From positions 1-64,000 of IMG/VR virus record IMGVR_UViG_3300009177_000028: a DNA stretch of 64,000 bases; one strand, given 5' to 3'. Each line of letters begins with the position of its first letter. Position 1 is the first letter of the stretch. The position numbers were made by a program, and so were the translations under genes. Below, piece by piece: positions 3,111-64,000 of the stretch. The notes beneath the pieces are model-generated. The model had not been told where the DNA came from and did no database searches. It saw only the letters and a list, made by a program, of their open reading frames with translations.

Positions 3111-3799
3111 GCAGCGAGAGTGATTTCGCGTATTCTTTAAAGCATAACACACACTTCATAGTAAGAAATGTTACTTTAGATCGCAAGAAGACAATTAAGA
3201 TTTTCAACTATCCAATTCTTTATGGACAGACCCGTGATCTTTTGGCTATTCCGGGAATCCAAGAAGCGGACATTCGCGCCTCTTTATTGAAAGGTGTGCT
3301 GCGCCACAAGCTTTTATGTCATGACATTGAGTTAGTCTCCAGCAACGTTGATTTGCTTCAATTCAGTGATAAGCAGCGTAATTGGTTAAAGAGTTACGGA
3401 TTCTCTGAAGGTATTGAGGTTGGATGGGACGAACTAGATGGTTATGTTCAAAACGCTATTAATACTAGTGGTGGAGGAAGTTTGGAGCCAGCCCATAAGA
3501 CTTTGAGAGACCTTATTCATTTTATTGATGAAGGTCCAGGTGATGGATTCTTATCTGGTGCAGTTAAGGAAATTTTACCAACAGGATCCCCATTCCCAAC
3601 GAGCGTAACTTGGTATCTTGATTCGGGTAAGACTCTAAAGCTAGTAGAAAAATTTATCACTTATATTAATAATACTTTCCCATATATTATTCAATGGAAC
3701 ATGTATGATACGGATGGCGTATCTCTTATTCATACTGTCACCGACACAATTACATACAGTTCTGCATTCGAATCAACTAGAACGAGGATGATAAGCTAA
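3107..3799 (+). CDS. Probable virion structural protein
   Basis: 230 aa, translationally coupled on both sides; beta-rich C-terminal half; one DGY. Confidence 0.55.
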   Translation: MSSESDFAYSLKHNTHFIVRNVTLDRKKTIKIFNYPILYGQTRDLLAIPGIQEADIRASLLKGVLRHKLLCHDIELVSSNVDLLQFSDKQRNWLKSYGFSEGIEVGWDELDGYVQNAINTSGGGSLEPAHKTLRDLIHFIDEGPGDGFLSGAVKEILPTGSPFPTSVTWYLDSGKTLKLVEKFITYINNTFPYIIQWNMYDTDGVSLIHTVTDTITYSSAFESTRTRMIS

Positions 3800-4296
3800 T
3801 GTCCAATGAATCACCAGCATCGATTTTGTTTGACGAGTTGGGCAATCCAATTGGAGTAATGCTGGATGGTTACGTCTATCGTTTGCAAGTTCAAACCATA
3901 ATTGATGATGGTTATTTTCATGGTCCCGTAGCTGTTAAGGGGCCTAATCAAGCGGCGCTAGCAACTGACCCATCTCTTGTAGTTGCAATCTCCCCCAATA
4001 ATTCGTTTACGGTAACTGGGGCTAAGCCCTCTACTACCAATACCTCTAGTGTAGCCGCATCTACTACGAATGTGACTTTACTTTCTTCCAATTTAACAAG
4101 ATTGGGGGCGACAGTCTATAATGATTCAATGTCTTTATTGTACATAAAATTGGGACCGACCGCAACCTTATCAGATTTTACCATTAAGCTGTTTCCATTG
4201 TCTTATTATGAAGTTCCTTACGGATATACGGGCGAGATAGATGGGTTTTGGTCAAATTCTTCCGGATTTGCTAGAATAGGCGAATTAGTGCCTTAA
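3799..4296 (+). CDS. Putative head-appendage or decoration protein, paralog of 4387..5424
   Basis: C-terminal ~85 aa (VTLLSSNLTRLGATVYN...YEVPYGYTGEIDGFW...ELVP) aligns with the C-terminus of the next gene; 2 DGY. Confidence 0.55.
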   Translation: MSNESPASILFDELGNPIGVMLDGYVYRLQVQTIIDDGYFHGPVAVKGPNQAALATDPSLVVAISPNNSFTVTGAKPSTTNTSSVAASTTNVTLLSSNLTRLGATVYNDSMSLLYIKLGPTATLSDFTIKLFPLSYYEVPYGYTGEIDGFWSNSSGFARIGELVP

Positions 4297-4386: not shown

Positions 4387-5424
4387 ATGTCTGGAGTATC
4401 ACCTTCATCAGTTCTATTTAGCTCAGATGGCTATGAATTAGCCATCGTTGACGGTTCCAGCTTTATTGCCGGAACTCGTAGTATTCTAATTGCCGGTAAT
4501 GACGGTTCTAATACTCGTACAGTTTTGATCGACTCTACAGGAAGACAAGTAGTTGTCGGCGCAGGTACCGCAGGCTCACAAGCCGGTGGCGTCATCACCA
4601 TCCAAGGAGACCCGGCAGGTACACCTGTTCCAGTTTCTGGTACGGTTGCAGTTAGCTCTGTTTCCGGCACCGTAGCTGTAACTCAGTCTACTTCCCCATG
4701 GGTTGTAAGCGGAACAGTAACCTCTAACCAGGGTACTCCAAACAGCTTAGCTAACTCTTGGCCAATCACCATTACTGACGGTTATGGTAACATCCAAGGC
4801 TCTGCTGTTAACCCAGTTTATGTTCAGGGTAACATTACAGCTAACAACTCATCCGTAGGTGCAGATAACGCAGCTTTCCTATCCTTCGATACACAAGTTG
4901 GTGGCAAGGTTACTACAGCAGCTCCAACCTATACCAACGGTAACTTAAGCGCTCTATCTCTAACCACTCTTGGTGGTTTGCGTATTGACGGCGTCTATGC
5001 TGGAGCAACTGCAACCTCTACTGCTACTGATATGATGGTAAGTGGTGGTTATGTAACAACCGCAGCACCAAGCTATACAAACGCTACACTAAATGCTTTG
5101 TCCTTGGACACTTCTGGTAATTTGCGTGTCACTGGATTCGTAACAACTAACAAGGCTTCCTCCTCTGCTGTTACTTCCACTTCCGCATCAACAAGCAGCG
5201 TTACAATTTTGGCAAGCAATGCTACCAGAGTTGGCGCAACTGTCTTCAATACCAGCTCCAAGGTTATGTATGTCAAGCTTGGCGCCACTGCAAGCACTTC
5301 CAGCTTTACCACCCAATTGTTTGCTAACTCCTACTGGGAAGTTCCAAACGATTACACCGGCGTTATTGACGCTGTCTGGGCCGGTACTGGCGGAGCTGCA
5401 ATCGTAACTGAATTGACTCCATAA
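4387..5424 (+). CDS. Putative head-appendage or fibre protein
   Basis: Ser/Thr/Gly-rich 345 aa; shares N- and C-terminal modules with 3799..4296 and the GxDGxNxRxxxxDSxGR / PVSGTV repeats with 5540..8212. Confidence 0.6.
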   Translation: MSGVSPSSVLFSSDGYELAIVDGSSFIAGTRSILIAGNDGSNTRTVLIDSTGRQVVVGAGTAGSQAGGVITIQGDPAGTPVPVSGTVAVSSVSGTVAVTQSTSPWVVSGTVTSNQGTPNSLANSWPITITDGYGNIQGSAVNPVYVQGNITANNSSVGADNAAFLSFDTQVGGKVTTAAPTYTNGNLSALSLTTLGGLRIDGVYAGATATSTATDMMVSGGYVTTAAPSYTNATLNALSLDTSGNLRVTGFVTTNKASSSAVTSTSASTSSVTILASNATRVGATVFNTSSKVMYVKLGATASTSSFTTQLFANSYWEVPNDYTGVIDAVWAGTGGAAIVTELTP

Positions 5425-5539: not shown

Positions 5540-8212
5540 ATGGCAAGAGTTGAAGGTGGCGCTGTAACCATACTTACAGATTGGCCAGGATTAAAAAATC
5601 AGATAGACACCAGAAGTCTAAATTAGAGATTCGAAGAAACTGATGTTTCTTATGAAATTTTTGCAATTGATGGACAATATTTTTACACCGCACCTATCTA
5701 CAAGTCTGGAAAGGCCCCAGATAATCAAGCTACCTATGATACATATCGTGCTGATTTCGAAGCTAATTACAAAAATAGAATTACTGATTTTAACGCCACT
5801 GATCCAATTTTTCTTACTAATGTAGATGGTTACTCTGTTATTCTTAAGGACGGGGCCTCTCCAACTGCGAATGATGGATATGGTATTGCTGTAATTGGAA
5901 TCGATGGTTCCAACTATAGAATGCTTAAAATGGATTCGTCGGGTCGTCCAGTCATGGTCGGTGCTGGTACTGCCGGAAGTGCTGCTGGAGGAATTGTTAC
6001 TGTTCAAGGCGATCCTAGTGGAGTTCCAATTCCTATCTCAGGAAATATTACTGCTTCTAATGCTTCTGTAGGAACAAACGATGCCGCAATTCCTGGATTC
6101 TCTAATTTAATTGGTGGTTCCGATGGAACAAATCTTCGTTCGCTTAGAGTTTTTGACGTTGACTCTGGTGGCGGGCAGCAATGGGTTCTTGGCGTTGGTC
6201 TTCGCAAAGCTGCTGGTGGCGGTTCTGTTGAACTAGGCACATCTTCAGACCCGATTAGGACGGATCCAACTGGGACTACTACTCAGCCAGTTTCTGGTAC
6301 CGTTACCGCCAACCAAGGTGGAACTTGGACAGTTCAACCGGGTAATACAGCCAATACTACTCCGTGGTTAATTACTATTAGTCAAGGTGGAAATGCGGCC
6401 ACCGTAACTGGCGCCAATGCTTTGAAAGTAGATGGTAGTGCAGTTACACAACCAGTTTCTGGTACAGTAACTGTTACCCAATCAACCGCTGCAAATCTTA
6501 GGGCACAGTTAGCCTCTGAAACATCTACTGGCTCTTCTATTCCATCTACCGCATTGATGATTGGTGGCTCAGATGGTTCTCTTTTGAGAGCACTTTTTGT
6601 CGATTCATCTGGTCGTCCATTTGTAGTTGGAGCGGCAGCTAATGGCGCTGCTGTTGCTGGTAACCCAGTATTGGTGGCTGGCTCTGATGGCACTAATGCT
6701 CGTTCGATTAAAACAGCCAATGACGGAACTGTTAGAGTCGATCCAACCGGAACAACTACTCAACCAGTATCAGGAACTGTTGCTGCAACTCAGAGTGGTA
6801 CTTGGACGGTTCAGCCAGGTAATACGGCTAATACTACTCCATGGTTAATTACTATTAGTCAAGGTGGAAATTCAGCTACTGTTACTGCATCAAACGCTTT
6901 AAAGGTAGATGGATCTGCCGTTACACAACCGGTTTCTGGAACCGTGACGGTAACTCAAGCAACAGCATCAAATTTACGTTCTCAAACATCTTCAGAATCA
7001 AATACGGGCTCGGCTGTACCAACACAAGCCTCAATGGTTGGTGGAACAGATGGAACTAATTTAAGAGCAATATCTGTTGATTCTTCTGGCAGACAGATAG
7101 TTATCGGGGCCGCTGCCGATGGTTCTCCAATTACTGGTAATCCAGTATTGATGGCCGGTCAAGATGGAACCAACGTTCAAAGCATAGCTACTGATGGATA
7201 TGGTCGTGTACAGGTGTCCATTACTGGAACTTCTAGTACTCAAGTAGAAGGGCGAGCTGCTGACGGTTATACTCAGGTAGGAAATCCTGTATCTATAGCT
7301 GGCGTTGATGACGATGGTTATGTTCAAAATTTACATGTAGATAGTTCAGGTAATTTGCAAGTAGTTTCCGTATCCGCAGTTGGTACTTCCACCACCCGAA
7401 GGATTAGCCAAAATATTGCAACTAACGTTACTATTTATAATGATTATACGGTTCCGGTTGGGCAAACTCTTTCCGTATCATCTTATTATATGGGCGGTGG
7501 AAGTGCCGGAAGATCGACTCTAGCAAAACATACTTCCGCCAACGTTGCATTTATTACCAACGGAGATTTTGAAAACGGAACACAGGTTGCAGCTTGGGCC
7601 GCCGTTACCGGAAGTTTTACAGCCCCAACTCCAGATTCAAATTCAACACAATTCCAAACTGGTGCCGCTTCTATGAGGTGGACATATGCCAACAGCGCTA
7701 CTGCATTGGCAAGAAGACAAACTTTTACTCCGGTTATTGACTTGTCTGGGTATAGATATCTTCGTGTAAAATTCTTTAACGACGCAGCTACCGGTACAAC
7801 TAGAACTATTTCTATCATCGTTGCGTCAGGTACACCAACTAGAACATATTCGTTGTCTGGCACTCTTGGTTCGGCCCCATTTACTGCCAATACTTGGATC
7901 ACATTAACAGCAGATTTAGATAACCCAACCACTTCGACAGGAACGGGATTTGATTTAACGGCCGTAAGCACTATTACTTTACAGATGCAAGATGCCGCTA
8001 ACAAAACAGGTACCGTGTACTGGGATACCCTACGCCAAGAAGATCAATTAGATGTTAGACATCGTCTATATACCTCTACAGGAGATACTGTAAGTGCACC
8101 TTTGAATCCGGTTGAAACATTCAATGCAAGCGAATCAGTTTATTTAATTGCTAGAAATATAGGCAATACTACAAACGAATATACTGCAATATGGTCGGGG
8201 ACATTAGTTTAA
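5540..8212 (+). CDS. Large repeat-containing fibre or appendage protein (890 codons) with an in-frame TAG at 5624-5626
   Basis: ATG at 5540 with AAGAGGA RBS is in frame with the 5921 ORF; the extension aligns without gaps to the N-termini of 8225 and 9275; C-terminal carbohydrate-binding-like beta-sandwich; 5 DGY. Confidence 0.7.
6263..7216 (+). repeat. Two tandem ~477-nt (159-aa) coding repeats
   Basis: Units start DPTGTTTQPVSGTV at 6263 and 6740; protein nearly identical, third codon positions diverged. Confidence 0.85.
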
Positions 8213-8224
8213 AAGAGGGAAGAA

Positions 8225-9271
8225 ATGGCAATTAATTTTGGTGGAAATGTAGTAATATATGAGCAGTGGACAGCATTAAAAACAACCGCTGTTAATAATA
8301 CTTTATCTATTCAATATTTAGAGAGTAGTGATAGGTATTCAATATTTGTAATTGATGGTGGTGTTGTTAGAGCATGCACTATATATACCGGAACTATACC
8401 TAATTTCGTTGATCCTGATGTTGGTGATCCATCAGATCAATCAACTAATGATTCGTACAAATCAGACTTTGAAACTAACTATAAACCTACGGCTAATTCC
8501 CGTATTTCTAGAACCGATAGTTTCGGAGATCCAATTCATTTGGATTTCGTGGATGCCGTTGCATTTGGGTTAATACCAAACGCTACTAATGGAACAGCTA
8601 ATGGATATATTGGCACGGCTGCAATAACTACAGTTGCTGTTAGGGCTACAAGTTATATTGCTGATACAACCGCAGCTCAGAGAAGCGTCGTTTCTTCTAG
8701 TGCCAACGATACTTCTGCGGGTACTGGAGCACGAACTGTCAAGATTACCTATTACGATAATTCTGTTAATGGACCATTTACTGAAACAGTTACTATGAAT
8801 GGCACCACACCAGTTAATACCACCAATACTAATATTCGTTTTATAGAAAAAATGGAGGTAGTGACAGTCGGCTCAACGGGATCTAATGCAGGCACTATTT
8901 CACTAAAACAAAATACGGGTGGTGGAGGAAGTACCCTCGGATCTATTGCGATTAGCGACAATCAAACTTACTGGGCACATCATTATGTAGCTGCCGGGAA
9001 AACTGCACACATTTATGCTGTTAGGGCAGGCTCTTCAATCACTAATGGAATAGTAAACGTAATTGCTACAGGCGATCCAACTGCTACCAATTTACCATCC
9101 AAAAACATCTCTAATGGTATAAGAATGGGATCAGCCAATCAGGTAGTATCATTTTATGAATGGGTGGCCCCACTTTCAGTTGTTGGTCCCAATTTTGTGT
9201 TTATCAACACCAAGCCAGATGCAGTGACCGCCTCCACTATTTATGCTTCTTTTGACTATTCGGAGTTTTAA
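8225..9271 (+). CDS. Putative virion appendage protein, paralog of 9275..10288
   Basis: Shares the N-terminal module (W..LK...L.IQY...Y.IF.ID...DFETNYK) and the C-terminal module (AAQRSV.SSSA.D.SAGTG.RT..ITYYDNS.NGP...RFIEK...TYWAHHYV) with the next gene. Confidence 0.6.
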   Translation: MAINFGGNVVIYEQWTALKTTAVNNTLSIQYLESSDRYSIFVIDGGVVRACTIYTGTIPNFVDPDVGDPSDQSTNDSYKSDFETNYKPTANSRISRTDSFGDPIHLDFVDAVAFGLIPNATNGTANGYIGTAAITTVAVRATSYIADTTAAQRSVVSSSANDTSAGTGARTVKITYYDNSVNGPFTETVTMNGTTPVNTTNTNIRFIEKMEVVTVGSTGSNAGTISLKQNTGGGGSTLGSIAISDNQTYWAHHYVAAGKTAHIYAVRAGSSITNGIVNVIATGDPTATNLPSKNISNGIRMGSANQVVSFYEWVAPLSVVGPNFVFINTKPDAVTASTIYASFDYSEF

Positions 9272-9274
9272 CCT

Positions 9275-10288
9275 ATGTCAGTAAATTTTAACGCCAATGT
9301 CACAATTTCAAATACTTGGACCAACTTTAAATCAATTACTACGTCTAAGACATTGCCTATTCAATATGATGATGATGGTATAACATACACTATTTTTGCT
9401 ATTGATGACCCCATGATTTATATTTGTACTATTTGGAAAGGTACTGTACCGAGTGGTGTTATTGATGGTGGTTATTCTCAGGCCCAAAATGATACTGATG
9501 AGTCTGACTTTGAAACAAACTATAAGCCGTCAGCTAATAAGAACGTAAGTATTCTTTGGACGGCTGAAAGAGCTATAGCGGCCGGCATTATTTTGAACGG
9601 ATTGTCAGGAGCTATTGGTGGGTATGTAGGAACTGCATCTGCTTCTTTGGTGACAGTGCGCGCGACCGCTTATACAGAACCAAGCTCAGCAGCGCAACGT
9701 TCTGTAGCCTCATCCAGTGCCAGTGATTCATCTGCTGGAACCGGCACTAGAACCATTAGAATTACCTATTATGATAATTCGATGAATGGTCCATTAACTG
9801 AAGATATTACTATGAATGGAACTAGTAACGTAAATACAGTGGCAACTAACATTAGATTCATAGAAAAAATTGAATCACTAACTGTTGGATCTAACGGCGG
9901 AAATGTTGGAACTATTACTTTATTTGGATCAACTAACGGCGGTGGTGGTACAGTAGGAACAATTGCTGTTGGTGATGGTAGAACTTATTGGGCTCATCAT
10001 TATGTTAGGCCAAGCAGAACTATGTTTATTAGAAAGTTAATTCTTAGCACTGGAACTGGTGGTACTGCTGCTAATGCCTCCATTAGAACGGCCACTCCAT
10101 TAACCGCTAACGCATTTGAAAACCAAATTGGTACACAGTATAGAGTTGTAAATGGTACTACTGGTAATGTAATTGATTTTGATGCACTTGCTGCTGTAAA
10201 TGGACCTGCCAGAGTAACTATTTATGTAAAGCCTGATGCAACTACCGCGAGTACATTTTATGCTAACTTTTCATACTATGAGATTTGA
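9275..10288 (+). CDS. Putative virion appendage protein, paralog of 8225..9271
   Basis: Aligns along its length with the upstream gene. Confidence 0.6.
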   Translation: MSVNFNANVTISNTWTNFKSITTSKTLPIQYDDDGITYTIFAIDDPMIYICTIWKGTVPSGVIDGGYSQAQNDTDESDFETNYKPSANKNVSILWTAERAIAAGIILNGLSGAIGGYVGTASASLVTVRATAYTEPSSAAQRSVASSSASDSSAGTGTRTIRITYYDNSMNGPLTEDITMNGTSNVNTVATNIRFIEKIESLTVGSNGGNVGTITLFGSTNGGGGTVGTIAVGDGRTYWAHHYVRPSRTMFIRKLILSTGTGGTAANASIRTATPLTANAFENQIGTQYRVVNGTTGNVIDFDALAAVNGPARVTIYVKPDATTASTFYANFSYYEI

Positions 10289-10353
10289 TCGTCCGACATT
10301 TGCATAATTAGATATTGATCGTGAAAGATAATCTTTTACTTAGGGGAACAAAC

Positions 10354-11262
10354 ATGGTTGTTAATCCACTTTCTACTCCTCCTATTCCAGTTAATAGCAA
10401 TTTGGATAGAGGAATGTTCGTATGGGTCACATCTAGTGCATCTCAAGATCCATTAGATACTGATACCGATCAGACCGCACTTTTAAATTTCTGCGGAACC
10501 AATAAAGTTAACGTACTATTTCTTGACATGTGGGTCTATCTTGGTGGTGCTAATTGGACTGCTACCAAATTAAGCAGACTACGTCAGTTTCTAGATGTCG
10601 CTCATAAGTCTGGCATCAAAGTTTATGCTTTGACCGGAAATATTGATTGGGCAATTAATCACTCTTGGGTTATGAAGAACATTGTTCAGAACCTACAATG
10701 GTTTAACGAGCAAGCAACTAGCCCAACTCAGAAATTCGATGGTGTAATGCTTGATGTCGAATATTGGACCGATACAAACCAAACTTCGGCTGTTAGCTTG
10801 CCAGGTCTTTGTGATTTGATTAAGGCTTTCCAAAACAGACTTGGACTTCCAGTTGGAGTCTTCACTGGTTTTTATCTAAAAGATAATACCAGCACTTGGG
10901 CAACTGTTGATTACAATGGCAAAAATGCTCAGGATGGAGAACACTTGATGGATGTTGCTGATTTCTGTGTAGTTGGTACTTATAGAGATCATGCTAGTGA
11001 TAACGGTACCGATGGTCCTGGCCAAATTTCTTTGTTCCAGCCATGGTATGATTATGCCTCTCAATCCGGCAAGAATTTTGGATTGTTTGCAGGTTCCGAA
11101 ACCACGAATGTCAGCCCCGCTTATATTACATACTTTGGCGCAACCAAGGCTTCCATGGAAACCGAGCACACCTTGATTTCTAATGCATTCCAAACCACTT
11201 CTAACTCCGTATTTATGGGTCAAGCTGTCCATAGCTATGACGGCTGGAAGGCAATGTCTTAA
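10354..11262 (+). CDS. Glycoside hydrolase-like TIM-barrel protein
   Basis: Alternating beta/alpha pattern with AHKSGIKVYALTG and FDGVMLDVEYW, typical of GH-superfamily barrels; ATG at 10354 has a GGGG RBS (track start 10315 is TTG). Confidence 0.55.
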   Translation: MVVNPLSTPPIPVNSNLDRGMFVWVTSSASQDPLDTDTDQTALLNFCGTNKVNVLFLDMWVYLGGANWTATKLSRLRQFLDVAHKSGIKVYALTGNIDWAINHSWVMKNIVQNLQWFNEQATSPTQKFDGVMLDVEYWTDTNQTSAVSLPGLCDLIKAFQNRLGLPVGVFTGFYLKDNTSTWATVDYNGKNAQDGEHLMDVADFCVVGTYRDHASDNGTDGPGQISLFQPWYDYASQSGKNFGLFAGSETTNVSPAYITYFGATKASMETEHTLISNAFQTTSNSVFMGQAVHSYDGWKAMS

Positions 11263-11283
11263 TTTTAAGACTTTAAAATGATG

Positions 11284-11318
11284 AATGCCCGGTTGGAAAC
11301 AGCCGGGCATTTCTATTT
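11284..11318 (+). terminator. Intrinsic terminator
   Basis: AATGCCCGGTTG-GAAA-CAGCCGGGCATT followed by TCTATTT. Confidence 0.85.
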
Positions 11319-11370
11319 CTATCTGCTTAATCTGATATATTCTTTAGAGACCCGTACCGGTGAGGTTTAA

Positions 11371-42646: not shown

Positions 42647-42658
42647 TAGGAATACATA

Positions 42659-43507: not shown

Positions 43508-43510
43508 AGT

Positions 43511-48589: not shown

Positions 48590-48591
48590 AC

Positions 48592-50643: not shown

Positions 50644-50651
50644 GGAGATTT

Positions 50652-55405: not shown

Positions 55406-58400
55406 ATGGTTACAATACGTTCTGTAAATGAAATTATCTTAAGCTTGATAGACTTCTTTAAGTTGGCGCAGCCCGACTTAGATACGAAGCCTGGTACGGT
55501 AGCCAGAGATTTATTCGTGGATGCTCCTGCAAGCCAATTAGCCCTGCTATATGATGAAATATCTGGCGTTGCTAACAAGCAGTCTTTGAGATTAGTGGTA
55601 GGCTCTGACTTGGATAAATTGGCTAAAAACTTTGGTGTTGTTAGAAGGCAAGCCTCTCCGTCTTCCGGATCTGCCATTTTAACTTTTTCCTCCATTAATG
55701 CTCCAGTTAGCATTAATCGTGGTTCCATTATAACCGCCAACAATGGATTTTCCTTCTCTGTAACTGCTGGTACCTCAGTTACCCCATCTGCTATCAATTT
55801 TTATCGCGCAGTTGCTGCCAAATATAGAGATCAATTAGACTTTGCTGGTATTAGTGATACCTTGGCCGTTCAGGTGACCGTTACTGCTACCTCTCCAGGT
55901 ACAACAGGAAACATCGGAACCTACTCACTTGCCAAGACCAGTATTGCTGGCGTTAGCAATGTAACCAACGTAAATCCTTTCACTGGCGGTACTGACCAGG
56001 AAACAGACGCAGTCTTCCGTAATCGTGTTTTAGCTTCGTTTAGCGGCTCTAGCGTGGGTACGGCCCTAGGTTATCTAAACGTGGCTCTAGGAACCACTGG
56101 AGTGGGTGACGCGGAAGTTATTGAGCCAGGTGACGCCCTAATGACCAGAGATGGTACTGTTGTTAGTATCGCATCTGATGGAACAAGAACTATTGTTTCC
56201 GAAGGTTCTGGCGGTAAGGTAGATGTTGTTGTTTTGGGTTCAAACTTAATCGAAAGTTCAGACAGCTTTATCTATCAGGATAAAAGCAATAATAACGATC
56301 CAACCAATGTTAAAAACGATGTGGTATTGGGCCAAATTGCGGCTGATGTTAATAAGACCATTAATAGAAAGAGAATTGATGATATTGCTTCTGGTACTTT
56401 ACCATCCCAGCCAGTAGATAGTATCGTTTCAGTTACCGGCTCTTTAAGTGGATCCAACTTTGCTCCTAAAACCACAGACACCTATGGTAGAGTATCTGGC
56501 AATTTTGAATTAGCAAAAGACACTGGGGTTTATGGTGGAAGCCCATTCGGTTTCGATACGTTCCACTGGGTATCAAACAAGGTTTCTTTGTTCTCTGAAG
56601 ATAAAATTAGAGGACAGTTTAACGGACAAGATGCTACTACTTTTAAAGACGTATTAGAGATTCCTCAGGCCCAGCAAACTCTTTCTATCACCAATGAAAA
56701 CAGTACGGTTACTTCTGACCGCTCCATCATTCAGTTGTTGCATACCCCAGCTACCAACGTAACCAGAGTATTCAATGTTAAGACTGGTGAGAGATACATT
56801 ATCACTAGTCAGAATTTAGATGGTACCGGAACGTTTAATACAACTGGTAGAATTCAAATTTCAGGAAACACTCTTCCTTCCACCAGTGACCAGTTGCAGG
56901 TAGACTACAACTGGATTGTTAATTTTGATCAATACGCCGATTATGATGGTCTAACTTATACTAGTAACCCACGTAGCGTTACGGACAGTATTGATTGGGG
57001 TCTAGCATCAGTTGTTAAAGAGGAAAAGATTACTTTTACTCAGGCTACTGGAAACAACTTCTTTACTGGAACGGCTAATCATCCAATTAGTACCGTTTTA
57101 ACTGCTAAGTCATTTTTGGAAGTAGATAGCACCGTTCAACAAGTTACCTCTGGAACTTTTATCAATAGACTGTCCGTTGTGGTTAGTCATTTAGCCGCAT
57201 CCACTACTAGTGTAGACTCTGTCACTTTAAAAAATTCAAGTGTAGAGTTGTATAATACTGCACAAGCAGACGGAACATATACAGTTGCAGCCGAGGTAGT
57301 TGGTATCAATATTTTATATGTTACCACCATTATCCTTCCAACAGATACAGTCGCAACCAGTGGTGAAAAAGTTACAGTTATCCTAGATAGTACTGACGTA
57401 TTCCACTCCGATGCAACAGCAGGTAGCAGCAGCGGAACTCAGATCACTATTCCAACCACCCTAATAGATACAACCGCTACTACCATAAATTTACTAGTAA
57501 CTTATATTGCTAACGTTACTGACTTGTTCTCTTCATCAATAACCACTTTACCAGCTAGCCGTGCCGGTAATGGATTTACAGTATCTAATAATGCTGGTTT
57601 TACTAATTTTAGTTCAACTAATATTTCTCGTAGAGAAAATCAAATTGTACAGCAGAATTTAAGTAGCCAATTTTATGTAGAGTTAACTGTCCCAAGTGCC
57701 GACTTTAGTTTGGTTGCATCACAAGTAGTCTCGGTCATTAGATTGTCTGATGGCTATGAGCTATGGTCCAGTAATCACCCAGGAACAATTGATGTTGGTA
57801 CCTCTGGAAATTATCAGTTGATTTTCTCGGGATTTAATAACCCAACCATTGGTGACAGAGTCTTGATAGTATATTACTCCACTGATGCTAGAAGATTTCA
57901 GCCATTTAGTTTTAGTAACGATTTAATTAAGACTAGAGTTGATACATTAACACTGGCTCCAATTGCTGGCAAACTAAGAGTCTTACTTAACAAGTTTATC
58001 AATAAATCTAGCCTTACATTTAATGTAATAGAGCCAAACACGGATATCGTTCTTTTCACGGGATCAGATGGATATCTTACAGATAATGGTAATGGAACGG
58101 CAACCTTTGGTAGTTTGACAGTAGATTTTTCTACACTACCAGATTTGACTAACAAAAAATTAAATGTTCAAGTTCCAGTTTCTGGATTCACTGATGTTAA
58201 TGACGATGGGTATTATGATATTACCGCCTATACGTTATCAACGAATACAATGACTATTACAGAAACTCTAGATAACATAACCGCAGATCAAATTTCTATC
58301 ATTAGAGTGTTAGATGGTCAAGAAATTTGGAATTCGAAGGGAACAATTGATGTTCTAAACAACAGACTATTGATTTCCTCTTCGACTGCCGCTAGTGCTG

Positions 58401-59515
58401 GTGATCTTGTTTATGTTATGTTTTTCAATCTTAAGAATTTGCGAAAAGCAGCTACACGTGTCGTAGGAACAACCGCTGACCAAGTAGTTAACTCAGGTAT
58501 TTTAACTGTCAGCGGAACTACTCTAACCAAAGCAGACAGTTATATTTTCACCTCCACTAATACTGGTCTGAAACTAAATTTGTCGGAGGCCCTTAGAAAA
58601 GCCTTAGGATTAGCTTCCACTGCCTCCATTCCATCTAATGTAAGAATTGCCAAGATAGTAAAGGTGGAAAAAGTTGAAACAGCTAGTCAGACAGATGATA
58701 CTGTTTTAAGTGTGTTAACCACTTATGACATTAAAAACACCACTATTCAAAATAACTTGTTTTACATGGATGAGATGTTAGCCGATCCAACCCTTCAGGC
58801 ACTGGACTTCATTCTACCAAATACTCAGAACAACTCGCTAAACACTTCTCCAGTCAACCTACCAACCCTAGGTGACAAAATTAGAGTTACTTTCTACTAC
58901 GCTACTGATGGAGATACCGAAAACCTATCATACACCAGAAACGGAACGTTATATACCAATAAGAAATTTGCTTTAATTGATAAGATGTTTATCGCTTCCG
59001 GTTTTAAAGCATCACAAGCTACCAGGTTTACAGCTTCTTCTTTCACACAACCAAGTCTAGGTTCTAGATACAAAGTATATTACGATTATCTTGCACCAAA
59101 ACAGAATGAAAGAATTGTAGTTACCTACAGCTACAATAAGATCATCTCAGACGTAACGTTTGCCATTGAAAATACTAGACCAATCAATGCTGACGTTTTA
59201 GTTAGGGCAGCTAAGGAAATATTACTAGACCTAACTATTAACGTAGTAATTGATTCAACAATGACAAGCTCCACTAGTACCATTCTACAAAACTTACGCG
59301 ACCAATTGGTTAGCACACTCTCTACTACTACCCTAGGGGAAATAATCGATCAACCAACTATTATCAACGTAGCGCAAGCAGTAAGCGGAATTGCCAGAGC
59401 CAGAATTCTTTACTTTAATAAAACTGGAGAAGATGGTCAGGTACTTAAGATACAGGCACAGAAGGATGAATTCTTTGCGCCTAATAACATAGTAATTAAT
59501 ACTGAAACCAGATAA
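55406..59515 (+). CDS. Baseplate J-like wedge protein with a large insertion
   Basis: KPGTVARDLF, GSDLDKLAKNFGVVR, GGTDQETDAVFRNR at the N-terminus; gpJ-like C-terminus; 1369 aa; 3 DGY. Confidence 0.85.
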   Translation: MVTIRSVNEIILSLIDFFKLAQPDLDTKPGTVARDLFVDAPASQLALLYDEISGVANKQSLRLVVGSDLDKLAKNFGVVRRQASPSSGSAILTFSSINAPVSINRGSIITANNGFSFSVTAGTSVTPSAINFYRAVAAKYRDQLDFAGISDTLAVQVTVTATSPGTTGNIGTYSLAKTSIAGVSNVTNVNPFTGGTDQETDAVFRNRVLASFSGSSVGTALGYLNVALGTTGVGDAEVIEPGDALMTRDGTVVSIASDGTRTIVSEGSGGKVDVVVLGSNLIESSDSFIYQDKSNNNDPTNVKNDVVLGQIAADVNKTINRKRIDDIASGTLPSQPVDSIVSVTGSLSGSNFAPKTTDTYGRVSGNFELAKDTGVYGGSPFGFDTFHWVSNKVSLFSEDKIRGQFNGQDATTFKDVLEIPQAQQTLSITNENSTVTSDRSIIQLLHTPATNVTRVFNVKTGERYIITSQNLDGTGTFNTTGRIQISGNTLPSTSDQLQVDYNWIVNFDQYADYDGLTYTSNPRSVTDSIDWGLASVVKEEKITFTQATGNNFFTGTANHPISTVLTAKSFLEVDSTVQQVTSGTFINRLSVVVSHLAASTTSVDSVTLKNSSVELYNTAQADGTYTVAAEVVGINILYVTTIILPTDTVATSGEKVTVILDSTDVFHSDATAGSSSGTQITIPTTLIDTTATTINLLVTYIANVTDLFSSSITTLPASRAGNGFTVSNNAGFTNFSSTNISRRENQIVQQNLSSQFYVELTVPSADFSLVASQVVSVIRLSDGYELWSSNHPGTIDVGTSGNYQLIFSGFNNPTIGDRVLIVYYSTDARRFQPFSFSNDLIKTRVDTLTLAPIAGKLRVLLNKFINKSSLTFNVIEPNTDIVLFTGSDGYLTDNGNGTATFGSLTVDFSTLPDLTNKKLNVQVPVSGFTDVNDDGYYDITAYTLSTNTMTITETLDNITADQISIIRVLDGQEIWNSKGTIDVLNNRLLISSSTAASAGDLVYVMFFNLKNLRKAATRVVGTTADQVVNSGILTVSGTTLTKADSYIFTSTNTGLKLNLSEALRKALGLASTASIPSNVRIAKIVKVEKVETASQTDDTVLSVLTTYDIKNTTIQNNLFYMDEMLADPTLQALDFILPNTQNNSLNTSPVNLPTLGDKIRVTFYYATDGDTENLSYTRNGTLYTNKKFALIDKMFIASGFKASQATRFTASSFTQPSLGSRYKVYYDYLAPKQNERIVVTYSYNKIISDVTFAIENTRPINADVLVRAAKEILLDLTINVVIDSTMTSSTSTILQNLRDQLVSTLSTTTLGEIIDQPTIINVAQAVSGIARARILYFNKTGEDGQVLKIQAQKDEFFAPNNIVINTETR

Positions 59516-59517
59516 TT

Positions 59518-62500
59518 ATGGATACACTTAGAATACTCAACGTACAGGTTAACGACAGTTCAAGCATCGATGTTACTTTCACCGAAGCTTTAACTCCTAA
59601 CCTTATTACGTCAAATGTTTCTATAATTTCCGAAATCTCTGGTATTCCAGACTCAGACGTACTTACGATTAGTATCTCTGACGCCACTTTGTCTATTACC
59701 TGCCAGCCACTTACGCCGCTAGCTTCCTACTTTTTAGAATTTAAGTCGGTTATGTTTCATCCCTTTGAGTCACTCAATGGGAACGCCATTATCGTAGAAG
59801 ATACAGTTTCTAATAGATATTTTATTACTGCTCCACTTGAGCCAGACAATCCAGTTAAAAACTATTTAGATTCATTTCTTTATGGGAACATCTATAATAA
59901 TACTGATGATAATACGGTAATTGCAAAATACATTAAGTCACTAGCGGTTACTGTATCTAAAGCTTTGTATGATATTAGGCAGCTTAACAATGAAAACTAT
60001 TTAAGTTTTAATGTTATTGATGAGCATAAGGTTCGTGGTGCTGGCCCCTTCGATAGACTAAATGAAGAGGGAGCGTATGAAGTTTTGAGAGTTGGTAGAA
60101 CTCCTGCTGATGCAACTGCTAACAATACTTTTCCATTTGAATTTTTTCCAACCTACCCAGTTACTTTACAAAAGCAGAGTAATGTAGAAGTCTTAACCCC
60201 CAATTCCTTGGATGAAGCTGGATTTTTTAACATCAATTCCTTGACGCTCAATCTAAGTAATTCGCCGGTTACTAGGGTCACTAGCATCGTCTTTACTTTA
60301 AACACTATTAATCCAGTGTTTACCTATGACATAGAGGCTCTTGGATACCAAATACTAGACTCTAGATACGATCAAGATTTTGGATTTACCTATCTACAAT
60401 TGGCTGATAATCAAATTAGAATAAGCGATCAAATTTTAGCTGATGCTAATTTTTCTTTAGAAGACATTATTAGAGTTGATGTTCAATATGAATCTAAAAA
60501 TTTAGGTGTTGTTGTTGATCCATCTACAGTTAATGTATATACTACACAAACTTCTACTAGAGAAGTGCTCCCACCTATTATCAATATTTTTAATTTGAAA
60601 CATGCTCCTATTACGGATGTATCGAATAACATCCCAACATTAGGCGGAGTTACTTTTATTGATCCTAATACGAATACGGGAACGGCTCACCCTGCTTTTA
60701 AATATGAAATTCCGTTCAGGTTCAATGCCCTACCATCTACTCCCGGACAGTATGCAGTTGATTATGCTACCGGAACAGTTTACGTATATGGTAATGATCT
60801 AAATAATGATGGAACGGGACCATACCCACCGTTGGCTACCTATAAATATAGGCTTACTTATCAGTCTGAGATTGATTATGTCTATGATCCTGATCTTCAG
60901 GATATCGTAGCTCTACCAAATGGAAGCTTGGTTGGATATGCTGGCAATGTCAATTTTCAATATGAAGAAGTGCTAATTCCAGGTACTGATTATAAGGCCG
61001 AGTTACATAACGAACAGTTGAATGAGCGCATTCAAAATAGGCTCGTTGCCCTTAACGTACTAAAAACTAAGTACACCCCCATCACCAATGTGTTCAGAAT
61101 CTTCAATGAAACCTCTGGGGAAATTTATACGCTCAATAGATGGAGTGATGATAAGATCTATTTTAGATACAATACTCCACCACGTTTAGTCGCGCAGTCT
61201 GCTGAAAGAGCTACCTTTAATACCGTTTCTAATGAAGTTCTGTTTGTTAATAATACTTTAACGAATGGGGACGGTTACAGCATCTTCAAGATTTTCCTAA
61301 ACAATAACACAATCGTTGATTCGACTGAAGACGGCCTAGCCTCTTCATTCAACACCAGCCTAGTGTTTTCTAATGGTAATCTTTTTATAGTTGAAAAATG
61401 GTTTAATAGAAACGAAACTATAAGCTCCAATATAAATAGACTAACAGAATATGGTCAATATATGATTGACTATGTTAATGGGGTTACTTATGTTGCAGTT
61501 TCTAATATTTCAAATTTTAATTTAGGAACTGTTAGCTATAAAAATAACGCTATCACTCCTTTATTCCCACATGTTATCACTACAGATGATATCTACTATC
61601 GTATTAGTCCATTAAATCCAAAGAACAAACAATTTGGTTACACTTCATTTGAAGATGGATTTATTTATCCTGAAACTTTAGATCCATCAGACGAGATGTT
61701 CTTGAACAGTAGTGTTGCGGCCCCTTATCAATTGTATAACGGTAACGTTGGAATTTTCATGGGAAGCACCTTTGTGCCAGGAGTTACCAATCAGGTTAAG
61801 TTCGTTAGAGCCATTTATGAGTTTAATGATCTAAACAACAGTGTAAGTCCTTACAATTTTGCTCAAGCAAGCCTTTCAACCGGCTTCAATATTACAGTTG
61901 GAACAGTCTCGAAACAAGTATTTGATACGGTTCAATTTGATGGTTCCAATTATTACGTTCTTATTAACGAAAATATTTCGTACCTATCACCAAACATTAC
62001 GTATAATTTTGCCGTCACAAGACTGTCTGACTCGGCAGCCCTTTGGAGCGGCAGCTTATCCAATGTGGTTACTGGCGATCAAGTTAAGCTACTATTGACT
62101 ACTGGATCTCCATCAGTCGGAGACCAGGTTGTTATTGACTATACACTTACAATTAATAACTTCTCACAAATTGTCATCGACTACAATAAGGGTGATTACT
62201 TTATTGATTATACTTACTTGGCCGATGAAATCATTGTTAGTTATGAGTACGGCGATAACGTATTAGATTTCAGACACAATAGAAATCTACCAGCCAATTC
62301 AGAATACTATGTTTCATATAAGGCCGGGGCTTTAAGAGACGCTTTGTTAAAGAATTTTGGTACCTTGGTAAACGTTCCAGAGCTAGCAACATTTGATGTT
62401 GACTTTAACCGTGAACGTTATCGCGATGCATTAACGGCCGCCCTTACATCATTCATTCAGGGGCCAACCGTTACGGCTATCAAAAATATCGGTAAAACCA

Positions 62501-64000
62501 TTTCTCATATTGAGCCAGAAGTAATTGAATCGGCCTTCTTGAATTGGTCTTTGGGAAGTAGCTTGCTTTACCCAGAATCAGTTACTACTACAGGCGCCTA
62601 TCAGCTACTACCGGGCAAGTTTGGTAACGGCGCACTTGTTAACTCTTCAGATCAAAGTATTAAGTTTCCAGTTAACTCTAACCTAAGACTAGAAGAAGGA
62701 ACTTTTGAAACATGGATTGTTCCACAATGGGATGGTTTAGATAACGATACTAGATTGACCTTCACAGTTCTTAAAGACGGATATGCTATTGCCCCAAACA
62801 ATATCTTTATTGGAGCCGCTGAGTATCACCCAGATAGTAATGTTTTCTCTATAGACAAAAGAGGTAACGTAGGTGGCACCCCAAATACCAATAAAGATGG
62901 TGTCTTTATTTATTACGATAAGGATATCTCTGGAAGCTTCTTCCGTTGGTATGTTGAAGTCATAGACGGATACGTTAGCCCAGGTAGTTCAACCTATCAA
63001 TTCACAATCTCATCAACTGGTAGCTTCTACGACAGTAAGAGTATGGTTCTACCAAAGCCATCTAACCTAAGCATCTTTACGGGCGCTAGTAGCCTTAGAT
63101 TCACTATTACTGGAGGTTCTGGCGGTATTGATGAGGGAGTTACCTTCGTTTCAGATACCGAACATTATCTATTGGATTTTGGAGAGACTCCATCTAAAAA
63201 TAGATTATCCATTTACAAAGATGTAAGTGGATACATGAACTTCCGTGTATTTGACCGTGAAAAGGCCGCCTCTGTTGTTAGCGCCGATGTCTCTGCCTGG
63301 CATGCTGGAGAGGCTCACCACGTAGCCGCTTCTTGGAAACTAAATACTATTAACGGACGAGATGAAATGCATCTCTTCATCGATGGATTTGAAGTTCCAA
63401 ATATTATTAAGTATGGGCAAAAGCTTCAACCATATCTTCATGAGAAATTTAGAACTGTCAACCCAGAAGAAATTGTAGGTTTGGTTGATCGTGACATTGT
63501 AGCTTCTGTCGATCTTCAGACAATTGCGGGCAACAATACAGTTACCTCTAGCCTTAATTTCAATACATATCAAATTTTCCCAGGAGATACAATCTTTATT
63601 GATGAGGTTGGTTTCTCTTTAACTGGCTATACAATTACTGGAGTTAGCGGGCAAACGTTAACTCTAAGCGCAAGTATGCCGGTTACTATGTCAAGCGGTC
63701 ACTTCTCAATTAATAGAACATCATTTACTGTTACTTCAGATATCGATGTCGCTCCAAATATTGCCGTTACTACCATCCATGCTTTGGTAGATGGATATTT
63801 GAATGGCACTGATATGTCAGGAAGTCTTGGCGGTAATACCGTTACCTCAGCCGGCTCCAATTTCGTAGCTGCTGGCGTTCTACCAGGTTACTTAGTTAGA
63901 ATTGATAATAACTCTTTGGACACTGCATATACCATTTTGTCGGTTGCAGCAAATACATTGACTATTAACACTACACTACCTATCAATTTCACGGGACAGA
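59518..64000 (+). CDS. Giant baseplate wedge or fibre-attachment protein, 3'-truncated by the window edge
   Basis: ATG 2 nt after the gpJ stop; no stop in the ORF track for this frame; contains a gpI-like segment (LLKNFGTLV...ERYRDAL...QGPTVTAIK, ~62341-62500) and a LamG-like region (~62610-63400); 4 DGY. Confidence 0.75.
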   Translation, partial: MDTLRILNVQVNDSSSIDVTFTEALTPNLITSNVSIISEISGIPDSDVLTISISDATLSITCQPLTPLASYFLEFKSVMFHPFESLNGNAIIVEDTVSNRYFITAPLEPDNPVKNYLDSFLYGNIYNNTDDNTVIAKYIKSLAVTVSKALYDIRQLNNENYLSFNVIDEHKVRGAGPFDRLNEEGAYEVLRVGRTPADATANNTFPFEFFPTYPVTLQKQSNVEVLTPNSLDEAGFFNINSLTLNLSNSPVTRVTSIVFTLNTINPVFTYDIEALGYQILDSRYDQDFGFTYLQLADNQIRISDQILADANFSLEDIIRVDVQYESKNLGVVVDPSTVNVYTTQTSTREVLPPIINIFNLKHAPITDVSNNIPTLGGVTFIDPNTNTGTAHPAFKYEIPFRFNALPSTPGQYAVDYATGTVYVYGNDLNNDGTGPYPPLATYKYRLTYQSEIDYVYDPDLQDIVALPNGSLVGYAGNVNFQYEEVLIPGTDYKAELHNEQLNERIQNRLVALNVLKTKYTPITNVFRIFNETSGEIYTLNRWSDDKIYFRYNTPPRLVAQSAERATFNTVSNEVLFVNNTLTNGDGYSIFKIFLNNNTIVDSTEDGLASSFNTSLVFSNGNLFIVEKWFNRNETISSNINRLTEYGQYMIDYVNGVTYVAVSNISNFNLGTVSYKNNAITPLFPHVITTDDIYYRISPLNPKNKQFGYTSFEDGFIYPETLDPSDEMFLNSSVAAPYQLYNGNVGIFMGSTFVPGVTNQVKFVRAIYEFNDLNNSVSPYNFAQASLSTGFNITVGTVSKQVFDTVQFDGSNYYVLINENISYLSPNITYNFAVTRLSDSAALWSGSLSNVVTGDQVKLLLTTGSPSVGDQVVIDYTLTINNFSQIVIDYNKGDYFIDYTYLADEIIVSYEYGDNVLDFRHNRNLPANSEYYVSYKAGALRDALLKNFGTLVNVPELATFDVDFNRERYRDALTAALTSFIQGPTVTAIKNIGKTISHIEPEVIESAFLNWSLGSSLLYPESVTTTGAYQLLPGKFGNGALVNSSDQSIKFPVNSNLRLEEGTFETWIVPQWDGLDNDTRLTFTVLKDGYAIAPNNIFIGAAEYHPDSNVFSIDKRGNVGGTPNTNKDGVFIYYDKDISGSFFRWYVEVIDGYVSPGSSTYQFTISSTGSFYDSKSMVLPKPSNLSIFTGASSLRFTITGGSGGIDEGVTFVSDTEHYLLDFGETPSKNRLSIYKDVSGYMNFRVFDREKAASVVSADVSAWHAGEAHHVAASWKLNTINGRDEMHLFIDGFEVPNIIKYGQKLQPYLHEKFRTVNPEEIVGLVDRDIVASVDLQTIAGNNTVTSSLNFNTYQIFPGDTIFIDEVGFSLTGYTITGVSGQTLTLSASMPVTMSSGHFSINRTSFTVTSDIDVAPNIAVTTIHALVDGYLNGTDMSGSLGGNTVTSAGSNFVAAGVLPGYLVRIDNNSLDTAYTILSVAANTLTINTTLPINFTGQ

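Follow-up and report, generated by a model that had tools for sequence, protein, structure and literature searches.

The tripeptide Asp-Gly-Tyr (DGY) is strongly over-represented in the predicted outer virion proteins of an uncultured soil jumbo phage and throughout its clade, at about ten times the frequency expected by chance. In the 64,000-nucleotide stretch that was analyzed (positions 1 to 64,000 of IMG/VR record IMGVR_UViG_3300009177_000028, hereafter the window), six-frame translation identified 49 copies on the plus strand, all within the coding frames of 18 ORFs, and only 1 copy in the three minus frames. These counts agree exactly, gene by gene, with those of an earlier note made from the sequence alone, and its observation is therefore confirmed. 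The expected number is 3.8 based on independent residue frequencies and 3.6 based on per-protein composition (3000 shuffles: mean 3.6, sd 1.9, maximum 14; z = 24), while a first-order Markov model, in which the DG and GY counts are themselves inflated by DGY, predicts 9.4. DGY ranks first of all tripeptides under both models (p about 7e-37 and 1e-19). In control myoviruses, the observed/expected ratio is only 1.4-3.6 (compared to 13 here) and DGY is nowhere near the top of the ranking; the value of about 3.6 for T4 derives in part from the Seg endonucleases.

The signal is specific to both the residues and their order. Near-variants are at or close to background (observed/expected: NGY 3/4.1, EGY 2/2.3, DGW 1/0.9, DAY 2/3.3), DGF (10/5.0), DGT (24/10) and DGS are enriched only about 2x, and the permutations YGD, GDY, GYD and DYG occur 2-6 times each. 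Codon usage within DGY matches the genome-wide usage for D, G and Y, and as there are no out-of-frame copies on the coding strand, the signal is at the peptide level. Flanking residues are almost unconstrained, with preferences of at most about 2x over 96 independent sites. The copies cluster within proteins: 10 pairs are found within 20 residues of each other, against 3.4 expected (P = 0.0004), with examples including DGYDGY and DGYFVDGYSVNPDGY.

The DGY-containing ORFs are all on the plus strand. A 230-aa ORF of unknown function (3107-3799; no Pfam hit) has one copy (nt 3437) that is kept in 15 of 19 homologues. It is followed by a 165-aa ORF (3799-4296) with two copies (nt 3865 and 3907) kept in 10/11 and 5/11 homologues (family total 18 observed, 0.4 expected) and a 345-aa ORF (4387-5424) with two copies (nt 4426 and 4777; family total 15 observed, 0.8 expected). 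The gene starting at 5540 carries an in-frame TAG at 5624-5626, and all five of its copies (nt 5825, 5873, 7193, 7262 and 7313) lie in the 861-aa piece downstream (5627-8212); the homologue in the relative L104 is uninterrupted at the TAG position. A 118-aa ORF (12260-12616) has two copies as DGYTSDGY. Two fibre-like proteins follow: one of 1093 aa (14970-18251) with a glycine-rich domain (Pfam ALK_LTK_GRD) and four copies, including the collar motif QDGYALTWLNTDGYW, and one of 906 aa (18251-20971) with a Laminin_G_3/ConA-like lectin domain and three copies, including PDGYVLKWSSSDGYW. A 112-aa ORF (22095-22433) has three copies (DGYSQRADGY and one more), a 299-aa ORF (22436-23335) has two, and a 522-aa ORF (25080-26648) has four, including the tandem DGYDGY at nt 25605-25622; three of the sites in the latter are kept in 4/4 homologues. 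A 575-aa ORF (26692-28419) has two copies (family total 16 observed, 1.1 expected). A 1513-aa virion protein (28974-33515) has five, including DGYGDGY; its family total is 157 observed against 10 expected, and DGY occupies 31 distinct alignment columns, of which 5 are kept in 18-28 of 29 sequences and about 20 occur in a single sequence.

A 247-aa glycine-rich protein (33525-34268; Pfam Gly_rich_2) has one DGY embedded in poly-Gly, and a 273-aa ORF just upstream of the sheath gene (34655-35476) has one at aa 132 that is kept in 45 of 46 homologues (family total 44 observed, 2.6 expected). The 940-aa tail sheath (35616-38438) was identified from Pfam sheath domains at aa 746-937 and an AF2 model that matches the T4 gp18, KP1 and phi812 sheaths. 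Its three copies (aa 411, 574 and 579) are all in the insertion domains; aa 411 is kept in 55 of 58 sequences, and a further 17 sporadic DGY columns in relatives all fall within aa 59-620. The remaining copies are found in a 733-aa baseplate-region ORF (51029-53230; two copies), a 1369-aa Baseplate_J-like protein (55406-59515) in which three copies (aa 782, 888 and 934) are all in the C-terminal extension beyond the J domain (aa 67-266), and a 2386-aa fibre protein that ends at contig position 66678, the first 1494 aa of which lie in the window (59518-64000; four copies in the window and seven in the whole protein).

In contrast, no DGY was found in the CCA enzyme, patatin, HNH, the 2H phosphoesterase, region 8225-12234 or the block from 38456 to 51008. 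This plus-strand block (4114 aa) contains tube-region ORFs, the 779-aa tape-measure candidate, the tube initiator, the 1692-aa hub, and 683-aa and 118-aa ORFs. Across homologues of its first six ORFs (tube to hub; the loci contained no homologue of the 683-aa and 118-aa ORFs), 0 copies were observed against about 15 expected. The earlier note had also listed a capsid protein as lacking DGY; as a correction to this, the major head protein identified by PHROG is the plus-strand ORF at 3-992 (partial at the contig start), based on its homologue L081:11309-12364 from a related locus (phrog_2522, 1.3e-77), and it too lacks DGY (family total 0 observed, 0.9 expected). Together, the capsid, tube, tape-measure and hub families have 0 copies against about 17 expected.

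This pattern extends beyond the window. There are 99 DGY against 9.2 expected over 162 kb of this genome (34 kb remain unread), located in 33 ORFs with none in 134 other ORFs, and 443 against 54 expected in 78 related loci. DGY occupies 68 independent alignment columns in 9 families, compared to 10-17 for NGY, DGF, SGY and GGY, and its ratio of columns to expectation is 2.74, compared to 0.99 or less for every other tripeptide. Some sites are near-invariant, such as sheath aa 411, aa 132 of the ORF at 34655 and D52-G53-Y54 of a 216-aa protein encoded upstream of the capsid gene (19/19). Others are recurrent gains where relatives have xGx loops (G is present in 40% of the other sequences, but Y in only 3%), including the hypervariable loops of the sheath and of the 216-aa protein. 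Replication genes are at background: non-structural proteins are not clearly depleted (O/E 0.63, rank 1757 of 5305), and so there is no avoidance signature of a promiscuous modifying enzyme.

The earlier note had suggested a search for glycosyltransferases elsewhere in the genome, and such genes were found. Directly downstream of the fibre genes, outside of the window at contig 70.7-76.5 kb, is a conserved cluster encoding three predicted soluble glycosyltransferases (GTs) and a dTDP-glucose 4,6-dehydratase. Based on PHROG, Pfam and NCBIfam assignments, these are a 374-aa GT-B enzyme (phrog_2170), two GT2 enzymes of 244 and 276 aa (PF00535) and an RmlB-like protein (TIGR01181, 356.6 bits, below the cutoff of 365.1), encoded at contig 71.4-76.5 kb. 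None of the GTs has a transmembrane segment. The order fibre genes, GT cluster, TubZ holds in all 23 GT2-anchored loci, and at least GT-B, RmlB and u325 (a membrane-anchored protein encoded inside the cluster) are present in 51 of 52 TubZ-anchored loci. The fibre ORFs next to the cluster are DGY-rich in nearly every locus with enough upstream sequence, including the most distant relatives at 44-48% identity.

The note's interpretation, that DGY is either a sequon for a phage-encoded modification or a docking peptide coating the whole particle, is partly supported. Selection on the peptide rather than on the DNA, the sharing of a bare tripeptide by unrelated outer virion proteins, and its absence from interior proteins and from the non-structural proteins named above are upheld, but "virion-wide" is an overstatement, as the major capsid protein, tube, tape measure, hub and several baseplate ORFs have no copies. 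Our tentatively favored explanation, although it is less likely than not, is that DGY is a short functional motif that selection keeps and repeatedly re-creates on Gly-containing turns and loops in the peripheral domains of outward-facing proteins (the sheath insertion domains, fibres, peripheral baseplate proteins, a protein at the head-decoration gene position and several small ORFs), where it would serve as a recognition tripeptide for covalent modification of the Tyr hydroxyl. The prime candidate is O-glycosylation in the cytoplasm by the enzymes encoded downstream of the fibre genes, with the RmlB-like dehydratase supplying a 6-deoxyhexose donor; the result would be a glycan coat on the outside of the tail, the fibres and the head accessories. 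The enrichment and its specificity, the conservation together with recurrent gain, the clustering, the restricted distribution across proteins and the existence and synteny of the GT cluster are demonstrated by this analysis. That DGY is modified at all, that Tyr is the acceptor, that these GTs are the responsible enzymes and that the DGY-bearing proteins are all surface-exposed are inferences.

Several lines of evidence favor this explanation. First, a requirement for all three residues with nearly free flanks is typical of a sequon or short linear motif and not of a fold element. Second, a single turn geometry cannot explain the clustered copies. Third, in the sheath and the gpJ-like protein, the sites lie outside of the conserved cores. 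The number of independent alignment columns, the recurrent gains at Gly loops, the near-invariant sites, the restricted distribution, the conserved GT cluster and the precedents described below also favor it. However, the link between the GTs and DGY rests only on position and on co-occurrence within a single monophyletic clade, with no informative loss cases. Such clusters can also modify DNA or cell-envelope glycans, and both u325 and, in many genomes, an Fpg DNA glycosylase are encoded within this one. The major capsid protein lacks DGY despite being exposed, non-structural proteins are not clearly depleted, and in the sheath model DGY sits in mixed contexts (strand starts, strand ends, within strands and coil). 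In literature searches, no described glycosyltransferase was found that reads a D-G-Y sequon. As for an enzyme that might read the motif, the three predicted soluble GTs are present, while no PglB, PglL or Wzy_C-type oligosaccharyltransferase was identified in the Pfam assignments over contig 45-170 kb or in Pfam scans of 46 window ORFs. In its broadest form, which we consider somewhat less likely still, this hypothesis would have a large clade of soil jumbo phages using a dedicated tyrosine sequon to direct cytoplasmic O-glycosylation (or another Tyr adduct) onto essentially every outward-facing virion protein, with sites continually gained and lost in surface loops, giving a programmable, virion-wide coat with no described counterpart in phages.

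If DGY is a modification sequon, it would be the first sequence-defined acceptor motif for phage virion modification and the first that is tyrosine-directed. Virion glycosites could then be predicted from sequence in a widespread group of uncultured 120-480 kb phages, a compact three-residue tag and small enzyme set would be available for engineering protein or particle surfaces, and the role of phage surface glycans in stability, adsorption or evasion in soil could be tested. Even if DGY is purely structural, a tripeptide gained convergently at dozens of positions in unrelated proteins is an unusual case of motif-level selection that so far lacks an explanation.

Partial precedents exist for several of these features. 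In mycobacteriophages, phage-encoded GTs whose genes are located next to the structural genes glycosylate virion proteins, but these glycans are reported at the C-termini of capsid and tail-tube subunits (Freeman et al. 2023, Cell Host Microbe, as cited in PMC12619734). The outcome proposed here is the same, a glycan coat on virion surfaces, but the capsid and tube proteins have no DGY and the candidate acceptor is a Tyr inside an internal tripeptide scattered over at least 33 ORFs. The general O-glycosylation sequon of Bacteroidota, D-(S/T)-(A/I/L/V/M/T), is likewise a bare three-residue motif starting with Asp that marks many unrelated surface proteins for one machinery (the system is discussed in PMC8698959), but its acceptor is Ser or Thr and transfer occurs outside of the cytoplasm from a lipid-linked glycan, whereas the phage enzymes are predicted to be soluble and no oligosaccharyltransferase was seen in 170 kb. 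Tyrosine O-glycosylation of Gram-positive S-layer proteins (Paenibacillus alvei SpaA and Thermoanaerobacter; PMC2943079) shows that Tyr can be a stable acceptor on a bacterial surface lattice; the glycans contain rhamnose and a dTDP-sugar pathway is involved, as the RmlB-like gene suggests here. Those proteins have two to four sites each with no reported DGY consensus, transfer is by a membrane O-oligosaccharyltransferase during secretion and no phage is involved. Chlorovirus PBCV-1 uses virus-encoded cytoplasmic GTs and an atypical short acceptor motif, although that system is N-linked to Asn of the major capsid protein of a eukaryotic virus and its enzymes are unrelated. DGY does not correspond to the Asp-box/BNR repeat (S-x-D-x-G-x-T-W), as it is contiguous and lacks the D-x-G spacing and conserved Ser and Trp.

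The strongest alternative, possible but less likely, is that DGY is an unmodified, lineage-specific structural element: an Asp-Gly turn followed by a Tyr that packs or hydrogen-bonds across a beta-hairpin, favored in the beta-rich peripheral domains and fibres of this clade and spread by convergent substitution. Consistent with this, sites arise at pre-existing Gly loops such as DGT, NGN and NGQ, several are invariant as expected of structural residues, DGT, DGS and DGF are modestly enriched, T4 shows about 3.6x for DGY, DGY replaces GG or DGQ in recognizable fibre repeats such as DGYGNSVSG and DGYxLxW, and cytoplasmic proteins do not clearly avoid it. In the sheath, the only protein for which a usable model was obtained (a second model reached a pLDDT of only 37), many sites lie at strand starts or ends, but others are within strands or in coil. 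Generic Asx-Gly turns (type I' or G1-bulge) accept Asn for Asp and any beta-former after Gly, and NG is the classic type I' turn, yet NGY and DGW are not enriched and DGF is only about 2x. Furthermore, tandem DGYDGY and closely spaced triplets cannot each be a hairpin turn, the beta-rich tube and hub families have no copies against about 9.4 expected, and the enrichment is 13x here against 1.4-3.6x in other myoviruses.

It is unlikely, though not excluded, that DGY is a non-covalent docking or adhesion motif providing multivalent contacts for a phage decoration, cement or chaperone protein, or for an environmental or host ligand such as a polysaccharide or a cation. The restriction to outer virion proteins, the clustering (suggestive of multivalency), the Asp-plus-aromatic pair (typical of carbohydrate-contact sites) and the lectin-like Laminin_G_3 domains of several DGY proteins are in keeping with this. 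However, three residues with free flanks are too little for specific protein-protein docking, no candidate partner was identified in 170 kb, and invariant sites inside ordered beta-domains do not resemble exposed linear peptides.

More doubtful is a different chemistry at DGY, either another enzymatic tyrosine modification (phosphorylation, nucleotidylation, sulfation, oxidation or cross-linking) by an unrecognized phage enzyme or spontaneous Asp-Gly succinimide/isoaspartate chemistry used for cross-linking. The evidence for motif-level selection applies equally here, most ORFs have no assigned function, and the genome encodes other protein-modifying candidates: a SET-domain protein, an FGE-sulfatase-like protein 1.3 kb downstream of a small ORF with three DGY, a histidine kinase and proteases. 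None of these enzymes is known to target Tyr or Asp-Gly, none is positioned next to the structural genes as the GT cluster is, and Asp-Gly isomerization would be a liability for a long-lived particle. Finally, although DG and GY are individually over-represented and some sites belong to recognizable repeats, an artefact of composition, dipeptide bias or a repeated domain shared by paralogous fibre genes is effectively refuted, as DGY remains 5x over the inflated Markov expectation, far exceeds the per-protein shuffles, has nearly unconstrained flanks and occurs in unrelated protein families.

Searches of the annotated phage collection with the DNA of the window, which is the first 64 kb of the 204,387-bp metagenomic contig IMGVR_UViG_3300009177_000028 (also recorded as JGI Ga0105248_10000031), returned no match, and protein searches identified only a distant match of the sheath C-terminus to Bacillus phage G and Eggerthella phage LE2-3. 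Most ORFs have no Pfam or PHROG family. The recognizable ones include an HNH endonuclease, a Gp80-like fibre protein, glycine-rich and Laminin_G_3 fibre proteins, the sheath, a tube initiator, a sheath-initiator-like ORF and a Baseplate_J protein. The major head protein (phrog_2522) is the partial ORF at the very start of the contig (3-992), and the head module continues beyond the contig start. A CCA-adding enzyme (1053-2294, with the PolyA_pol, PolyA_pol_RNAbd and tRNA_NucTran2_2 architecture) and a patatin-like phospholipase (11371-12234, 5e-29) lie beside or among head and tail genes. A 2H/Acb1-like phosphoesterase is found inside the structural module on the opposite strand (23843-24454, minus strand); as its Pfam hits include the anti-CBASS protein Acb1 (7.8e-8) and the 2'-5' RNA ligase superfamily (3.4e-12), it may be an anti-defence gene.

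The observation made in the earlier note, that DGY is repeated about 49 times in 18 proteins, was confirmed: following six-frame translation, 49 copies were identified on the + strand, all in the frames of 18 ORFs with per-gene counts equal to those in the note, while one copy was identified on the minus strand. The gene that the note starts at 5540 contains an in-frame TAG at 5624-5626, so its two pieces were treated separately, and all five of its DGY copies lie in the downstream piece. This TAG interrupts the gene (5540-8212) 28 codons after its ATG, and no start codon follows until 5921. As a relative (L104) has an uninterrupted ORF with near-identical flanking residues, this is a nonsense mutation, an assembly error or a read-through site. 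The same genome encodes a class-I peptide chain release factor (PCRF/RF-1, 365 aa, contig about 147 kb), and no tRNA genes were found in the roughly 154 kb scanned (contig 1-133 kb and 132-162 kb).

The expected number of DGY copies is 3.8 from residue frequencies, 3.6 from per-protein shuffles (sd 1.9, z = 24) and 9.4 from a first-order Markov model that is itself inflated by DGY. DGY is the top tripeptide under both the residue-frequency and Markov models, far ahead of GGG (second, 65 vs 12.7 expected), which comes from the glycine-rich domains (Gly_rich_2, ALK_LTK_GRD) of fibre-like proteins at 33525-34268 and 14970-18251; one DGY sits in the middle of a poly-Gly tract. NGY, EGY, DGW, DAY and the permutations of DGY are at background, while DGF, DGT and DGS are enriched about 2x. 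Flanking positions -6 to +6 over 96 independent sites show at most about 2x preferences. Copies cluster, with 10 pairs within 20 residues against 3.4 expected (P = 0.0004). Based on these results, an artefact of composition, dipeptide bias or a shared repeat can be rejected. A signal at the nucleotide level can also be rejected, as codons within DGY mirror genome usage and there are no out-of-frame copies on the coding strand; the signal is on the peptide. Similarly, the enrichment is not a general property of myovirus structural proteins: four control myoviruses (phage G, LE2-3, T4 and phiKZ) give observed/expected ratios of only 1.4-3.6, with DGY never among the leading tripeptides, and three of the ten T4 copies come from the Seg endonucleases.

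The enrichment is a property of a clade and of particular protein families. The sheath retrieves 78 related loci at 52-100% identity (most 55-82%) on contigs up to 480 kb, and together these hold 443 DGY against 54 expected. The families rich in DGY (observed vs expected) are the sheath (100/7.8), the ORF 28974 family (157/10), the ORF 34655 family (44/2.6) and the ORF 3107, 3799, 4387, 25080 and 26692 families (14-20 vs 0.4-1.3). In contrast, the capsid, ORF 2376, tube, tape measure, tube initiator and hub families have none, with about 17 expected in all and 7.5 for the hub alone. When the contig was followed to 170 kb, 99 DGY were identified over the first 162 kb against 9.2 expected; these sit in 33 ORFs, while 134 other ORFs have none. 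The additional carriers are two more blocks of fibre-like genes at 107-131.6 kb, including a 909-aa beta-helix-like protein with 10 copies and a 132-aa ORF with five, plus two small ORFs.

In nine DGY-bearing families, the motif occupies 68 distinct alignment columns, while NGY, DGF, SGY and GGY occupy 10-17 despite higher expected frequencies. The ratio of columns to expected occurrences is 2.74 for DGY, and no other tripeptide exceeds 0.99. Some sites are nearly invariant, such as sheath aa 411 (55/58 sequences), aa 132 of ORF 34655 (45/46) and D52-G53-Y54 of the 216-aa protein encoded upstream of the capsid gene (19/19). Many other sites occur in one or a few sequences, within hypervariable loops. 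At these sporadic columns, the other sequences have Gly in the middle position 40% of the time but Tyr in only 3%, so new DGY sites are built on existing Gly loops with Tyr as the novelty. This combination of purifying selection and recurrent convergent gain is the strongest evidence that the tripeptide itself is selected.

An AF2 model of the sheath has a pLDDT of 80-90 over aa 33-640 and matches the sheaths of T4 (gp18), KP1 and phi812. All 18 DGY columns of the sheath family fall in the insertion domains (aa 59-620) and none falls in the conserved C-terminal core (Pfam hits at aa 746-937). In gp18 the insertion domains face outward, and it is inferred by analogy that they do so here. Local contexts in the model are mixed, with DGY at strand starts, at strand ends, within strands and in coil. 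In the gpJ-like protein, the three sites lie beyond the Baseplate_J domain. The capsid protein has no DGY, but the 216-aa protein with the invariant site is encoded at the position of the lambda gpD (decoration) gene: in the near-identical contig L079 (2129-5297), a charged helical 418-aa scaffold-like ORF is followed by the 216-aa DGY protein and then by the capsid gene, as in lambda Nu3-D-E. AF2 modelling of this protein was unsuccessful (pLDDT 37) and a profile search against PDB found nothing, so its predicted role in head decoration rests on gene order only.

A conserved gene cluster that is a candidate glycosylation locus lies immediately after the last fibre gene, just outside the window (contig 70.7-76.9 kb, corresponding to 5628-11778 of locus L118). 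In order, the contig encodes a 229-aa ORF, a 374-aa GT-B glycosyltransferase (phrog_2170), a 244-aa GT2, an Fpg DNA glycosylase, a 325-aa protein with one N-terminal transmembrane helix (u325), a 276-aa GT2, an RmlB-like dTDP-glucose 4,6-dehydratase (TIGR01181, 356.6 bits, just under its cutoff) and then a TubZ-like tubulin and the replication genes. The three glycosyltransferases (GTs) have no membrane segment. The set GT-B, GT2, u325, GT2 and RmlB is syntenic in all 23 loci retrieved with the 276-aa GT2, down to 44% identity, always behind DGY-rich fibre ORFs, while the Fpg gene comes and goes. An independent scan anchored on TubZ gave 52 loci with enough upstream sequence: 41 have the full set, 8 have GT-B, u325 and RmlB, 1 has all but the 244-aa GT2, 1 lacks only u325, and 1 has a different sugar-nucleotide cluster with no fibre gene upstream. 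The one locus with the cluster but a DGY-free large neighbour, in a divergent relative (L296), appeared to be a counter-example, as its cluster sits next to a 1206-aa ORF without DGY (462-4079). However, this ORF is made of Ig-like repeats with a recurring '...H.ITA.YSGD' motif and is an inserted gene between the fibre gene and the GT cluster, not a fibre homologue. A promoter and terminator scan for co-transcription of the GT cluster with the fibre genes did not exceed shuffled controls. A search of genome contigs with the RmlB-like gene was uninformative with respect to the host, as the best hits were 45% identity or less across scattered phyla. No hydroxymethylase-type DNA-modification gene was seen, and the thymidylate synthase is ThyX.

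We tentatively favour the explanation that DGY is a recognition tripeptide for a covalent modification of outward-facing virion proteins, most plausibly Tyr O-glycosylation by the enzymes of this cluster. The sequon-like features argue for this reading: the motif is bare, it is gained convergently in loops, its copies cluster and it is restricted to peripheral virion proteins. The conserved soluble GT set beside the fibre genes adds to this, and precedents exist for virion glycosylation in mycobacteriophages (cited in PMC12619734) and for Tyr-linked glycans on S-layers (PMC2943079). While the enrichment, its pattern of conservation and gain and the synteny of the GT cluster are demonstrated here, it is inferred that DGY is modified at all, that Tyr is the acceptor, that these GTs act on it and that the DGY-bearing proteins are exposed. 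The link between the cluster and DGY is positional only and comes from one clade, the capsid protein lacks DGY, and the cluster could serve DNA or envelope glycans. The interpretation in the earlier note, that DGY is a sequon for a phage-encoded modification or a docking peptide for a protein coating the whole particle, is only partly supported.

Avoidance of DGY by cytoplasmic proteins was also considered as an argument for a modifying enzyme. A set of proteins chosen post hoc as DGY-free gave 2 copies vs 26.3 expected, but an unbiased TubZ-anchored sample of 182,111 aa of replication-module proteins gave 15 vs 23.7 expected, an ordinary rank (1757 of 5305) that shows no real avoidance and corrects the stronger-looking estimate. 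Depletion was thus dropped as an argument, except for the tail-interior families.

The main rival, which we regard as somewhat less likely still, is that DGY is an unmodified, lineage-specific hairpin element. The origin of sites in Gly loops and the invariant sites fit this reading, while the lack of NGY, DGF and DGW enrichment (DGF being only about 2x), the tandem copies and the DGY-free, beta-rich tube and hub count against it. A docking or adhesion motif is unlikely but not excluded, and the same is true, with even less support, of other Tyr or Asp-Gly chemistry. Other possible protein-modifying genes elsewhere in the genome are those for a SET-domain protein, an FGE-sulfatase-like protein, a histidine kinase and proteases.

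Literature searches identified no DGY motif of this kind. Both phage virion glycosylation and three-residue glycosylation sequons have been described, but a tyrosine tripeptide spread over dozens of virion proteins with rapid site turnover would be new and, if the mechanism is confirmed, would be close to a separate category. The enrichment is real and unusual, while its function remains a hypothesis.

Further along the contig (132-162 kb, loci L197 and L198), accessory genes that are unusual for a phage were identified: these encode the SET-domain protein (164 aa), the FGE-sulfatase-like protein (294 aa), the histidine kinase with a response regulator, trypsin-like and C39 peptidases, ThyX, dUTPase, an IMPDH-family protein and an IF-1-like protein. 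A small ORF among early-type genes in this region (L197 8324-8926, contig 140498-141100) carries DGYFVDGYSVNPDGY near its N-terminus and lies 1.3 kb upstream of the FGE-sulfatase-like gene, while its neighbouring 185-aa ORF, of the same length, has no DGY. In one relative (L284, 1-9969), the GT cluster upstream of TubZ is replaced by about a dozen ORFs of 180-410 aa, including three RmlB/epimerase paralogues, which may represent a larger sugar-nucleotide pathway.
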